Shown piece after piece: positions 1,860 to 37,325 of a DNA stretch of 64,000 nt. Numbering within the stretch: position 1 is the stretch's first letter; each line of letters starts with the position of its first letter. The position numbers and the translations under genes are program-made. The notes under the pieces are model-generated. The model searched no databases. It was not told where the DNA came from and worked only from the letters and a program-made list of their open reading frames with translations. The DNA lies in sequence record PQ741806.1; one strand, given 5' to 3'.

Positions 1860-2278
1860 GATCTTTCAAATACACCTTTCCAATTAGTAGGTCTTGGATA
1901 GGATCTAGGTAGTGATTCAGAATGTATAATGAATCCCTCGATATCCCCTTCTTTTGTTTTAACAGCAACTATATCTTTGATAATACCTTTTATTTGTAAT
2001 AAGCTATTCATAATCTCACGATAGAGTTGATCAAATCTATTTGCAATGATATTAGGATTGATTGGATAACCACAAATTGATTTATAGAAACTACACATTA
2101 CATCATTGTATCTATCTGGAACACATGTCCAAAAGAAATTATGTCGTTCTTTAATATAAAGAATGATCAAGTAGTTAAGATCATCTTCATCTTTTGCGGT
2201 ATAATTAAAGTATTGTTTTAATTCAGAAAAGAATTGTTGTGACCACCTCACATCAACTCGTATAAATAGTTGTTCCAT
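1856..2278 (-). CDS. Hypothetical protein (gp102-like); start moved to 2278
   Basis: The track start at 2302 lies inside a terminator hairpin; AGGTG RBS before ATG 2278. Confidence 0.7.
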   Translation of the reverse strand: MEQLFIRVDVRWSQQFFSELKQYFNYTAKDEDDLNYLIILYIKERHNFFWTCVPDRYNDVMCSFYKSICGYPINPNIIANRFDQLYREIMNSLLQIKGIIKDIVAVKTKEGDIEGFIIHSESLPRSYPRPTNWKGVFERS

Positions 2279-2294
2279 AATACACCTAAATAAA

Positions 2295-4268
<1,974 letters not shown>

Positions 4269-4272
4269 GGTA

Positions 4273-7328
<3,056 letters not shown>

Positions 7329-34717: not shown

Positions 34718-35212
34718 ATGTCAAATAAAGCTAAAGAACCAACTCTAACTAAAGAACAGGAAAAGACTCTACGTCTATTTGAACGTGCAGTTGGAGCATC
34801 AGCTGCCGCAGCTGATCATATTCTTAACCGTGATGGTTGGGATGTTGTCAATGTACTAGCAGGTTCCGTAGGTAAACGTATTCTACAAACTGAAGTATTC
34901 ATTAATCCAGTTATCAATAAGATCAATGAAATCATTCCGACGTTATCTGATCCTACTGGATTCCAAAAGAACCTACAAACAGTTATTGCTGACCTTAATC
35001 GACTAACTAAAATTATCAGTGTCCTATATGCACAACATCAAGGTAAGGCTGGTCCAGCAAATAATGAAGATGAACTAAAACTCATCAGTGAACTTGTTAC
35101 TAAATACACTGGTATTGAAGGTGCTATTGAACGCGGTATTGATGGTGTAATCCTAGCGATGATCGGCACTCTTCGAGAAGCTGGTTGGGACGAAAAACTA
35201 ATTCAACAATAA
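34718..35212 (+). CDS. Conserved hypothetical protein (gp78-like)
   Basis: GGAG RBS; first gene of a divergent unit. Confidence 0.7.
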   Translation: MSNKAKEPTLTKEQEKTLRLFERAVGASAAAADHILNRDGWDVVNVLAGSVGKRILQTEVFINPVINKINEIIPTLSDPTGFQKNLQTVIADLNRLTKIISVLYAQHQGKAGPANNEDELKLISELVTKYTGIEGAIERGIDGVILAMIGTLREAGWDEKLIQQ

Positions 35213-35223
35213 TGGAGTTTTAA

Positions 35224-36825
35224 ATGGCTACTGCTGACTTCGATAATGAGTACGATGATACTCCAGAAGAGAATTTACTAGATCAAATTGATGAGATCAA
35301 TGCGCAACACGATCCTGACTCTAGTATTGAAAATAATGACGAGGTGGAAACTCCACCTTTCGTTCCTGATCAAAAAGAAATTAAACTACGTATTCCACGT
35401 AATGCTAAAACTGGAAATATCCGGGATGCTTCTGAACCGGCTATTAAAGATAGTGCTAGCATTCTTACTTTACTACGTGAGAATCCCCAGACTGTTTATA
35501 ATTTCCTGGATCACAATAAAGAACTATTTAAAGCATTTGCTGATAATAAAGTAGATGACACTAGTGACGGTGTAAAGTGGACAGCTGCTATTCTGGAAGG
35601 CTTAGCTCACTCTATTGTTGAAGATGCACCAATCGGTGCAACTGCCCGAGAAGGTTCTGAATGGTCTAGTGAAATTCCTTATGGTGAAAAGATCATTCGA
35701 CCTGGCCGACCTGTATTTAATACCAATGGTCGTAAAATGACCGATGATGAAACTCTAGTTTTCCTAACACGTAAAGCTAACATCGGTACGCCATATGATA
35801 CTTTCCTACCTCATTCAGGTATTTGGGTAAAACTACGTGCACCTACTGGTACTGAAGTAGCTGCCCTACAAGCACGTCTAGCACAATTAAAGATCCGGCT
35901 AGGCGCTGAATCAAAAGGTATGCTGTTCTCAAACATGGCAGCTGTGTTACTTAACATGGTTAGTAGTTTAGCACTTGCATGTGTTATTCAATCCAACTAT
36001 AAGTTCAACACCCCAACTGATCTAGAGCATGTTATCTCAGTAGCTGATGAGCCGTTCTTGCATCACGCACTAGCGGCGACTATGTATCCAGATGGATTTA
36101 ATTATAGTTATCCATGCATTGCAGATGCCAATACATGTAACCATATTGAAACAGCGAAACTTAATATGTCAACGCTTGTTCAATATGATCTACTGGCATT
36201 CTCAGAAGAACAAAAGAAATATATTGCACGTAAGTTTAATGCATGTACTGAATCTGATCTTAAGACTTATAAAGAAGGATTCCGTATTGAAACTCAAGTA
36301 ACTGAAATGTTTGGTGACGTTGGTGTTGTTCTTGAGATGTGTACAATTGCTGATCGCCGAGAGTCTGGTGATAGTTGGATTAACTCAATTATCGATATGA
36401 CTCAAGGTAGTTTTAATGAACCAGTCGATGGTCCGCAACGTTCTCAGTATATTGCACGTTTACAAAAGATCTCTATTGCCCGTCAGTTCTCACATTTTGT
36501 TAAAGAAATTAAAGTACGTGAAGATGACGATGGTGAAAGTTCTGAAGACAATATTCGTACTGCAACCACTAATCGTGAAACTATTGAAAAGTTCTTAACT
36601 AATATTCTATCCACACCGGAATATAATGACCGCTTTATTAATGCGGTGAGTAACTTCATTGATTCACAACTAATTGGAATGATTGCAATTACAAGTTGGA
36701 ATTGTCCAGTATGTGAGTCACCTGCTGCTACTAAATTTAAAGAACGTTTCCCACACTTAATCCCTATTGACATGCTGTCAACTTTTTTTACTTTGGCGGC
36801 CTCGAAGTCAAACCGGATGGTGTAG
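35224..36825 (+). CDS. Baseplate hub/tail assembly chaperone-like protein (gp77-like)
   Basis: GGAG RBS; C-terminal CPVC Zn motif followed by ...STFF encoded on a T7 run, as in T4 gp26/gp51-type chaperones. Confidence 0.65.
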   Translation: MATADFDNEYDDTPEENLLDQIDEINAQHDPDSSIENNDEVETPPFVPDQKEIKLRIPRNAKTGNIRDASEPAIKDSASILTLLRENPQTVYNFLDHNKELFKAFADNKVDDTSDGVKWTAAILEGLAHSIVEDAPIGATAREGSEWSSEIPYGEKIIRPGRPVFNTNGRKMTDDETLVFLTRKANIGTPYDTFLPHSGIWVKLRAPTGTEVAALQARLAQLKIRLGAESKGMLFSNMAAVLLNMVSSLALACVIQSNYKFNTPTDLEHVISVADEPFLHHALAATMYPDGFNYSYPCIADANTCNHIETAKLNMSTLVQYDLLAFSEEQKKYIARKFNACTESDLKTYKEGFRIETQVTEMFGDVGVVLEMCTIADRRESGDSWINSIIDMTQGSFNEPVDGPQRSQYIARLQKISIARQFSHFVKEIKVREDDDGESSEDNIRTATTNRETIEKFLTNILSTPEYNDRFINAVSNFIDSQLIGMIAITSWNCPVCESPAATKFKERFPHLIPIDMLSTFFTLAASKSNRMV

Positions 36826-37286
36826 TTAATGATCTGAGATATAGTCGTCTTGAGGCCACTTTCAAGGAAGATAGTGGTCACATCCTACATCCAAACTTTG
36901 GTTATGATAAGTTAACTGAAGATGATACACACTTAGATAGACTATTATCGACAGTAGGGGCAGTAAGACCGTCTACAGCAGCACGTTTAACAAGAGAAGC
37001 ATATCTACTTGATTACGATATCGGTTCACCAGAAAACGGACCCATGTGGTTAAATAAGGTAAATCCTAAAGAGGACTTTATCGAAGGTGGGTTGAGAAGG
37101 AGACTGACTAGAGATTTCTTCAAGTATAAAGTAGGTAGCTTATCTAATATGTCATTAACTGAATTCTTTGAATTAGCTTATTCTGAGGTAGAATACATAA
37201 TTGAATTATGTAGAAATATTACCCATAATGAAGCTGTTAATAACAATAACCAGTTAAATGAATTAAACAAGCCGTTAACTAAATAA
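36789..37286 (+). CDS. gp76-like reading frame, open from 36771; probably translated as a -1 frameshift extension of gp77
   Basis: No stop and no ATG/GTG/TTG in frame between 36771 and ATG 37044; slippery T_TTT_TTT at 36783-36789. Confidence 0.7.
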   Translation, partial: YFGGLEVKPDGVVNDLRYSRLEATFKEDSGHILHPNFGYDKLTEDDTHLDRLLSTVGAVRPSTAARLTREAYLLDYDIGSPENGPMWLNKVNPKEDFIEGGLRRRLTRDFFKYKVGSLSNMSLTEFFELAYSEVEYIIELCRNITHNEAVNNNNQLNELNKPLTK

Positions 37287-37303: not shown

Positions 37304-37325
37304 CCCCTCTCCACATGGAGAGGGG
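37304..37325. terminator. Bidirectional terminator CCCCTCTCCA-CA-TGGAGAGGGG
   Basis: Strong stem; long U tract on the minus strand, TTTATG on the plus strand. Confidence 0.85.

Follow-up and report, generated by a model that had tools for sequence, protein, structure and literature searches.

Introduction

In phage lambda G/GT, and in the conserved tail-assembly-chaperone frameshift of long-tailed phages more generally (Xu, Hendrix and Duda 2004; summarised in PMC5009743), a -1 shift close to the 3' end of a morphogenesis-type gene yields a minor, C-terminally extended isoform; the two-frame arrangement is conserved far beyond sequence similarity, the gene pair lies between the tube and tape-measure genes, and the G/GT products are absent from virions and bind the tape-measure and tube proteins. 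Lambda G is a protein of about 140 aa. A low-level -1 shift near the end of phage T7 gene 10A/10B likewise adds a short C-terminal extension to a minority of molecules, in this case of a capsid structural protein; the original papers are listed among the references of PMC5009743. In Escherichia coli dnaX (tau/gamma), a homopolymer-type heptamer read by one tRNA species in both ribosomal sites gives two isoforms that share an N-terminal body, with shifting shortening the product and relying on flanking stimulators (PMC5009743). T4 reaches two products of gene 26, 26 and 26', by a different route, internal initiation in the same frame. T4 gp26 and gp51 (Pfam PF12322, T4_baseplate) are baseplate hub assembly chaperones, gp51 being absent from particles (PMC3004832), and their genes sit beside hub genes 27-29.

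Here we examine a window of 64,000 nucleotides from sequence record PQ741806.1, a phiKZ-type Pseudomonas phage, in which a run of seven T's near the end of gene 77 probably lets some ribosomes slip back one base and add a 165-residue tail. Because the same arrangement is kept in every relative examined, these giant phages seem to need both the short and the long protein. Neither the records examined nor the papers found in our literature searches report this frameshift or a mutant phenotype for gp77 homologues; the proteins called gp77 in the Goslar, PCH45 and PhiPA3 papers are different proteins.

Results

We first asked whether the sequence carries the arrangement proposed in an initial annotation, which described a slippery T_TTT_TTT fusing gp77 to a downstream 80-aa ORF, a 6-bp hairpin beginning shortly after it, and a G/GT-type tail chaperone pair. 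The observation itself is correct: the run falls as ACT TTT TTT ACT in the gp77 frame, the X_XXY_YYZ register expected of a slippery heptamer, and a tandem slip would join 522 residues from frame 0 to 165 from frame -1, as that annotation had counted (Table 1). The first ATG, GTG or TTG of the -1 frame lies 85 codons after the slip point. One name requires correction, as the 80-aa ORF is PHIKZ076.4 in the phiKZ record, not gp76. The arrangement is more than chance, since T7/A7 runs are depleted in the window (14 matches against 32.9 +/- 7.7 expected) and this is the only run of seven or more T's deep inside a long ORF that also has a long alternative frame downstream.

Table 1. Features of the gene 77 region, in window positions
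Feature	Position	Strand	Description	Supporting data
gp78 homologue	34718-35212	+	164 aa; first gene of the same + strand unit; ends 11 nt before the gp77 start	phrog_14050, unknown function; annotated PHIKZ078; Churi homologue gp255 detected in infected-cell proteomics (PMC11849849); a gp78-like gene precedes the gp77-like gene in phiPA3, 201phi2-1, SPN3US, phiEaH2 and PCH45
gp77 homologue, frame-0 product	35224-36825	+	533 aa; stop TAG 36823-36825; conserved Cys 298, 305, 494 and 497; invariant Phe521-Phe522	phrog_4585 at E 7e-196; alignment A1 of gp77; AlphaFold model with pLDDT 78.5 and pTM 0.81; 1,684 cluster representatives at E<=1e-3
Slippery run, proposed site of the -1 shift	36783-36789	+	T7 in register T_TTT_TTT over codons 520-522	T5-T8 run at the homologous position in 65 of 65 distinct loci and in five further phages
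Overlap open in both frames	36789-36825	+	Last 11 sense codons of gp77 and its stop in frame 0; first 12 codons of the extension in frame -1	0 stops in 960 -1 codons across 65 loci
Frame -1 coding region read after the proposed shift	36789-37286	+	165 codons plus stop TAA 37284-37286; the frame is open for 171 codons from 36771, after a TGA at 36768-36770	phrog_12109 matches from residue 26
80-aa ORF annotated in phiKZ (PHIKZ076.4)	37044-37286	+	C-terminal half of the -1 region; starts at its first canonical start codon, ATG 37044	Churi annotates only the last 45 codons; AttikonH10 annotates nothing on this strand
6-bp hairpin, not counted as a functional part	36792-36812	+	36792-36797 with 36807-36812	-4 kcal/mol, z = -0.07
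Terminator-like hairpin	37304-37325	.	GC-rich, 9 bp, flanked by A and T runs; terminator-like on both strands; 18 nt after the -1 ORF stop; probably marks the end of the gp78-gp77-extension transcript	

We next examined the site in 65 distinct relatives from IMG/VR, spanning 23-100% identity, and found strong comparative evidence for recoding. The absence of the run from relatives, or stops within the extension, had been named in advance as grounds for rejecting the idea, and neither is found in any of the 65 loci. The run, at the same Phe-Phe position, is T7-T8 in 38 loci, T6 in 22 and T5 in 5, in the forms N_TTT_TTT, T_TTT_TTC or T_TTT_TTG, although the five T5 sites are imperfect heptamers, among them G_TTT_TTC and, in the locus designated L026, GTT_TTT_ACG. 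The first Phe codon is TTT in 65 of 65, against own-gene TTT usage as low as 0-15%, so that TTT is kept even where TTC dominates; the summed log10 probability from own-gene codon usage is -41 if the loci are treated as independent, which they are not. In three loci (L041, L042 and L047) the amino acids have changed to Phe-Leu but the T7 run has stayed. The same arrangement is present in SPN3US, phiEaH2, Bacillus phage AgentSmith, Halocynthia phage JM-2012 and PCH45.

The -1 frame itself bears the marks of selection at the protein level. Within the overlap across the 65 loci it contains 0 stops in 960 codons, whereas the +1 frame contains 51 in 960, and the -1 ORF measured from the run is 149-181 codons (median 166) in the 64 complete relatives, while the first canonical start wanders from 8 to 136 codons after the run. 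The -1 products align from the slip point; a translated search of nucleotide sequences (tblastn) aligns phiPA3, 201phi2-1, Psa21, PA1C and others from residues 1-6 of the open frame. In an alignment of 60 extension sequences (A2), in which conservation of the stretch between the run and ATG 37044 persists down to 14-35% identity, the near-invariant H31, F37, G38, Y72 and P85 all lie upstream of that ATG; F37 and G38, conserved in 59 and 56 of 60, precede the first canonical start in 35 of 60 sequences. Among the 150 best of the 1,684 family representatives, none carries the extension in frame. We also asked whether the 686-687-aa relatives in BFVD were in-frame fusions, and in phiEaH2, the one examined, the extra length is N-terminal and the T run and -1 ORF are still present.

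By contrast, we found no conserved stimulatory element, whether a downstream hairpin or pseudoknot at 5-9 nt or an upstream Shine-Dalgarno-like sequence. The hairpin of the initial annotation exists but is weak, 85 of 200 shuffles folding as well, and an 8-bp stem starting 8 nt downstream has z = -1.05. Over the 65 loci the mean z of the downstream 70 nt is -0.7, RNAalifold predicts 0 pairs in 21 relatives, and an Rfam scan gave no hit; clade-specific stems remain possible, as the Psa21-like group has z of -2.2 to -3.7. There is no phage tRNA in the window that might bear on the site. In E. coli test constructs U_UUU_UUU is a weaker shifter than A_AAA_AAG (PMC5009743). No product of the -1 frame has been observed: the Churi proteomics tables, which were searched against the annotated proteome, list the gp77 homologue gp256 but not the annotated 45-aa fragment of the -1 ORF (PMC11849849).

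Having found that the two frames are conserved together, we asked what the protein might do. Searches of Pfam, NCBI-style family names and PHROG functions with gp77, gp78 and the extension returned only phrogs of unknown function. A PDB sequence search with profiles of both parts gave nothing for gp77 and one chance-level hit for the extension, and a Foldseek search of the PDB with the gp77 model gave a best E of 2.9. A model of the extension from a shallow alignment reached a pLDDT of only 54, and its fold search found only its own family. The gp77 model's sole tail-chaperone fold hit has E = 2.4 and probability 0.06. Foldseek against BFVD returned five targets named baseplate hub subunit, hub assembly protein (T4-like) or hub assembly chaperone, at E 2e-4 to 4e-3, probability 1.0 and target-normalised TM 0.51-0.57, a weak resemblance between predicted models for which no solved structure offers a comparison. 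Sequence profiles do not confirm it: T4 gp26 and gp51 match PF12322 at E 9e-64 and 4e-52, whereas none of the 20 A1 members matches even at E<=10, and hhalign against T4 gp26 and gp51, singly and as small family profiles, gives a probability of 7% or less over short CxxC-centred segments only, although the T4-side profiles were shallow (2 to 11 sequences). T4 gp26 has Cys pairs and a Phe-Phe four residues from its end, collinear with those of gp77, which we regard as a lead only. Two GenBank records label homologues as baseplate hub assembly protein.

The genomic context does not point to tail genes. The neighbours are gp78, gp79 (head protein), gp80 (virion RNA polymerase), small ORFs and the gp75 helicase, and the same context is seen in phiPA3, 201phi2-1, SPN3US and phiEaH2. 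The Churi homologue gp256 is listed among non-structural proteins detected at 15 min (PMC11849849), which is early for a tail assembly factor, and the 201phi2-1 gp136 and gp135 entries carry no mass-spectrometry note, unlike their neighbour gp138.

Discussion

We consider it likely that gp77 and the ORF after it form one recoded gene. In this view most ribosomes would read frame 0 and finish the 533-aa protein, while a fraction would slip back one base as tRNA-Phe occupies the T run and continue in the -1 frame to make a 687-aa isoform, whose extension would start with a Gly/Pro-rich stretch and end in helices. Our analysis establishes the anatomy of the site, its conservation in every relative examined, and protein-level selection on the part of the -1 frame that has no start codon; that the long product is made, that the shift is ribosomal rather than transcriptional, that both isoforms are needed in a fixed ratio, and that the protein is a non-virion assembly factor related in fold to the T4 gp26/gp51 baseplate-hub assembly chaperones are inferences, the last of them weak. 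The interpretation offered in the initial annotation is thus partly supported: a programmed -1 shift extending gp77 is upheld by the comparative evidence, the hairpin is neither significant nor conserved, membership in the G/GT-type family is not supported, and the suggested link to T4 gp26/gp51 receives partial support from predicted structure alone.

The site shares with lambda G/GT a conserved -1 shift near the 3' end, by comparative evidence only, and a reportedly non-structural product in Churi, but gp77 is far longer than G, is not located between tube and tape-measure genes, shows no sequence or fold match to tail-chaperone families, and has a plain U run as its slippery site; the G/GT label is an analogy only. 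Should the functional inference hold, the pair would work like G/GT without being its homologue. Unlike that of phage T7 gene 10, the extension here is a 165-residue region conserved across a whole phage family and belongs to a protein reported as non-structural, and unlike dnaX, the shift lengthens the product and no stimulator was found. The predicted fold of gp77 weakly matches models named after the T4 gp26/gp51 family, and both are non-virion or doubtfully virion proteins (PMC3004832), but gp77 is more than twice as long, does not sit beside tail genes, and would gain its second product by frameshift.

The best-surviving alternative, though an unlikely one, is transcriptional slippage, in which the phage RNA polymerase adds one extra U in a fraction of transcripts, an insertion with the same reading-frame consequence as a -1 shift. 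The pure homopolymer of T7-T8 in 38 of 65 loci, the absence of a recognisable RNA stimulator, and the unusual multisubunit polymerases with which these phages transcribe, encoded next to this gene, are consistent with it; however, runs of T6 or T5 are short for polymerase slippage, and T5 variants such as G_TTT_TTC favour the ribosome. The run always sits so that Phe codons occupy the ribosomal sites, as ribosomal slippage requires, although the conserved Phe-Phe would also give this register.

Less probable still is that the -1 ORF is translated on its own, from a non-canonical start or by re-initiation after the gp77 stop. T4 gene 26 has an annotated internal product, 26', and some relatives have a canonical start 8-21 codons after the run that their annotators used. 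Yet independent initiation would require neither that the -1 frame stay open back to the run, as it does in 65 of 65 loci, nor that TTT codons be conserved against codon bias; the start position is not conserved, in several loci the frame opens only 1-6 codons before the run, leaving no room for an upstream start, and by inspection we saw no evident Shine-Dalgarno sequence before ATG 37044. That only the 80-aa ORF or nothing is expressed, as in the current phiKZ annotation, with the upstream open frame arising by chance, is very improbable and already contradicted by the conservation of that stretch, by the conserved ORF length and by the phrog_12109 alignment. A homopolymer sequencing error, to which such runs are prone in some sequencing chemistries, or a recent pseudogenising indel that splits what is really one ORF is contradicted by 47 independently sequenced phiKZ-type genomes that keep both frames intact at 99% identity or more, by 65 divergent loci with runs of different lengths that all need the same shift, and by the lack of an in-frame version among the 150 best family representatives.

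A more far-reaching reading is possible but tentative, and in our judgement less likely than not: that this is a recoding event fixed in the core genome of the phiKZ-like, nucleus-forming jumbo phages and their relatives (over 1,600 protein clusters), working on a bare U run without a conserved stimulator and setting the ratio of two isoforms of an ancient baseplate-hub assembly chaperone that shares ancestry with T4 gp26/gp51. On this reading jumbo myophages would have evolved their own counterpart of the G/GT principle on a different protein.

The records examined annotate only fragments of 45-153 codons as a separate downstream gene, or nothing on that strand, and the public protein collection searched holds only truncated 96-131-aa pieces, so that a protein region of about 165 residues, conserved across a large phage family, is largely missing from databases. 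A U-run site without a recognisable stimulator, conserved in hosts from Pseudomonas to Bacillus, is a useful natural case for what suffices for bacterial -1 frameshifting, and bears on whether phage factors that bind ribosomes could tune it. For the phages themselves, a frameshift kept at 23% protein identity, with no in-frame fusion seen, argues that both isoforms and their ratio matter, giving a concrete handle on a conserved jumbo-phage gene of unknown function.

Genomic setting and anatomy of the site

The window is 100% identical in this region to phiKZ-type Pseudomonas aeruginosa phages (Pa_AttikonH10, Bobae, KTN4) and 99-100% identical to phiKZ itself, and reads in the reverse of phiKZ gene numbering. 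On the + strand, gp78 is followed in order by gp77, by the short open reading frame (ORF) that RefSeq calls PHIKZ076.4, and by a strong terminator-like hairpin; upstream on the other strand lie gp79 (a head protein) and gp80 (a virion RNA polymerase subunit), whereas downstream lie four small ORFs and the gp75 helicase. The hairpin, which scores as a terminator on both strands, sits between the convergent gp78-gp77 unit and the minus-strand small ORFs (PHIKZ076-076.3).

Coordinates of the features at the gp77 locus and of two comparison sequences
Feature	Sequence	Coordinates	Strand	Remarks
gp78	window	34718-35212	+	
gp77	window	35224-36825	+	533 codons; stop TAG 36823-36825
T7 run	window	36783-36789	+	read as ACT TTT TTT ACT, a heptamer in canonical register
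Open -1 frame	window	36771-37286	+	opens after a TGA; stop TAA 37284-37286; first ATG, GTG or TTG at 37044
PHIKZ076.4	window	37044-37286	+	last 80 codons of the -1 ORF, as called in phiKZ
ORF called in Churi	window	37149-37286	+	last 45 codons of the -1 ORF
Antisense CDS called in AttikonH10	window	37013-37123 and 37178-37270	-	inside the -1 ORF; probably spurious
ORF antisense to the 3' end of gp77	window	36483-36881	-	132 codons; spans the slip site; probably a shadow ORF
8-bp stem	window	36774-36800		GCUGUCAA with UUGGCGGC; U7 run in an 11-nt loop
Terminator-like hairpin	window	37304-37325	both	9 bp, GC-rich, flanked by an A run and a T run
T4 gene 26	L082 (T4, NC_000866)	5803-6429		
Frame-0 tail after the T7 run	L079 (PCH45)	2239-2380		44 codons

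The initial annotation, which had described a T7 run in slippery register and a -1 frame open without a start codon into the downstream ORF, proved correct in its sequence statements, including its count of 522 plus 165 residues for the shifted product. The small hairpin that it placed after the run is present, but is no better than shuffled sequence (z = -0.07). Seven-base T or A runs are under-represented in the window, with 14 matches against 32.9 +/- 7.7 expected from dinucleotide shuffles (all 100 shuffles had at least 14), and this is the only such run deep inside a long ORF with a long alternative frame after it. Annotation of the -1 ORF differs between near-identical genomes, with AttikonH10, Churi and phiKZ each calling different parts of the stretch, while the 132-codon antisense ORF is annotated in no record that we opened.

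Conservation across the gp77 family

To ask whether the arrangement is maintained by selection, we turned to relatives of gp77, a large family that tblastn finds in 226 phage records, including phages of Pseudomonas, Erwinia, Salmonella (SPN3US), Serratia (PCH45), Ralstonia, Klebsiella, Vibrio and Aeromonas and a Bacillus phage, and of which a profile search finds 1,684 cluster representatives at E<=1e-3. We retrieved 71 IMG/VR loci, which reduce to 65 distinct sequences at 23-100% identity, and analysed each frame separately; all searches, alignments and models kept the two frames apart. Every locus has a run of T5-T8 (T7 in 26, T6 in 22, T8 in 12 and T5 in 5) at the Phe-Phe position that is invariant in the protein alignment. 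The first Phe codon is TTT in 65 of 65, although in many GC-rich relatives TTT makes up only 0-15% of the other Phe codons of the same gene, and in three loci the residues became Phe-Leu while the T7 run stayed.

Between the run and the frame-0 stop, the -1 frame has no stop in 960 codons, whereas the +1 frame has 51, with only 28 of 65 loci free of them. Measured from the run, the -1 ORF spans 149-181 codons (median 166) in all 64 complete loci; by contrast, the first canonical start codon lies anywhere from 8 to 136 codons after the run. The -1 products align from the slip point, and the near-invariant F37 and G38 lie upstream of the first canonical start in 35 of 60 aligned sequences; in the window, five of the seven near-invariant residues lie before ATG 37044.

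Named phages show the same pattern. A tblastn search with the window's open frame reaches phiPA3, 201phi2-1, Psa21, PA1C and others from residues 1-6, and SPN3US, phiEaH2, AgentSmith, JM-2012 and PCH45 show the same run and frame relation. In PCH45 the frame-0 tail after the run is much longer than the 8-17 codons of the 65 IMG/VR loci, giving the short isoform there a much longer private C-terminus. Among the 150 best of the family representatives, the match always ends at or near the C-terminus of the protein, and no lineage seen has simply fused the two parts in frame; for phiEaH2, one of the two 686-687-aa relatives seen in BFVD, the extra length is N-terminal. We also found a 96-aa 'hypothetical protein, partial [Klebsiella pneumoniae]' on a 288-nt contig that is 90% identical to the phiKZ -1 ORF, probably phage-derived sequence in a bacterial assembly.

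Mechanism of the inferred frame change

On these comparative grounds, the evidence requires a -1 change of frame at or within the T run. We favour ribosomal slippage over slippage by RNA polymerase, both because the run is always positioned so that tRNA-Phe can re-pair and because 27 loci have only T5 or T6, which is short for polymerase slippage, although this preference rests on sequences that cannot alone decide between the two. Independent initiation of the downstream ORF fits poorly, as it would explain neither the open -1 frame back to the run, nor the codon choice, nor the conserved residues that lack a start. Chance, sequencing error and a pseudogene are excluded, as 47 independent phiKZ-type genomes keep both frames intact.

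We found no conserved stimulator of slippage. Folding of the 70 nt after the run gave a mean z of -0.7, with 15 of 65 loci below -2, mostly from one Psa21-like clade; RNAalifold predicted no pair in 21 Pseudomonas-group relatives, and Rfam returned nothing. The Psa21-like clade (IMG/VR loci L027, L012, L025, L016, L022, L061, L017 and L015) has, within about 3-70 nt after the run, a stem of up to 9 bp that starts 3 nt after it, with z of -1.8 to -3.7, which may be a clade-specific stimulator. In the window itself an 8-bp stem would hold the U7 run in its loop (-7.5 kcal/mol, z = -1.77), but we did not see it in relatives. Given that U_UUU_UUU shifts less than A_AAA_AAG in E. coli test constructs (PMC5009743), a low efficiency, giving a minor long isoform, is the natural expectation.

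Predicted structure and possible function

Sequence analysis of gp77 and the extension returned only PHROGs of unknown function and no Pfam family, and neither matches any PDB sequence meaningfully. The gp77 model is good (pLDDT 78.5, pTM 0.81), yet it has no fold match in the PDB. Searched against predicted viral structures, it first finds its own family and then models named baseplate hub subunit, T4-like baseplate hub assembly protein and baseplate hub assembly chaperone, at E of 2e-4 to 4e-3 and target-normalised TM of 0.5-0.57; two GenBank records already carry a hub-assembly label for homologues. The extension could be modelled only poorly (pLDDT 54, with helices at residues 100-160 at about 75-84), and its model matched only its own family.

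The possible link to T4 led us to compare gp77 with the products of T4 genes 26 and 51 (NC_000866), both of which belong to Pfam PF12322. Neither that profile nor hhalign detects gp77, so that the link rests on predicted folds alone, and the jumbo-phage extension showed no similarity to T4 gp26 or gp51 in profile comparison. T4 gp26 has Cys82, Cys84, Cys187 and Cys190 (the last two forming a CxxC motif) and a Phe-Phe at 204-205 of 208, four residues from its end, collinear with gp77 Cys298, Cys305, Cys494, Cys497 and Phe521-522, which we record as a lead rather than as evidence. T4 gene 25 starts on the last base of the gene 26 stop codon and thus lies in the -1 frame relative to gene 26.

T4 gp26 and gp51 are hub assembly chaperones, and gp51 is not in the particle (PMC3004832); the Churi homologue of gp77 is listed among non-structural proteins detected 15 min after infection, with 12 peptides in one data set (PMC11849849). 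This early detection, together with the neighbouring RNA polymerase, head protein and helicase genes, argues against a tail-assembly role, and we regard the hub-chaperone reading as about as likely as not.

Relation to known systems

None of the ten GenBank or RefSeq records that we opened annotates a joined CDS, and our literature searches found no report of this frameshift. The interpretation offered by the initial annotation, a programmed -1 shift making a G/GT-type tail chaperone pair, is only partly supported: recoding is strongly supported by comparison, whereas assignment to the G/GT family is not supported, as tests of location, size, sequence and fold all fail. What the analysis itself establishes is the anatomy of the site, its conservation in the relatives examined and protein-level selection on the part of the -1 frame that has no start codon; the long isoform is inferred from this comparison rather than from an observed product, and its ribosomal origin and any function are likewise inferred. 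The functional analogy remains plausible. In this view the locus would work like lambda G/GT, in that a conserved -1 shift near the end of a non-virion morphogenesis-type gene makes a longer minor isoform, but on a protein that may instead be a distant, as yet unproven, relative of T4 gp26/gp51.
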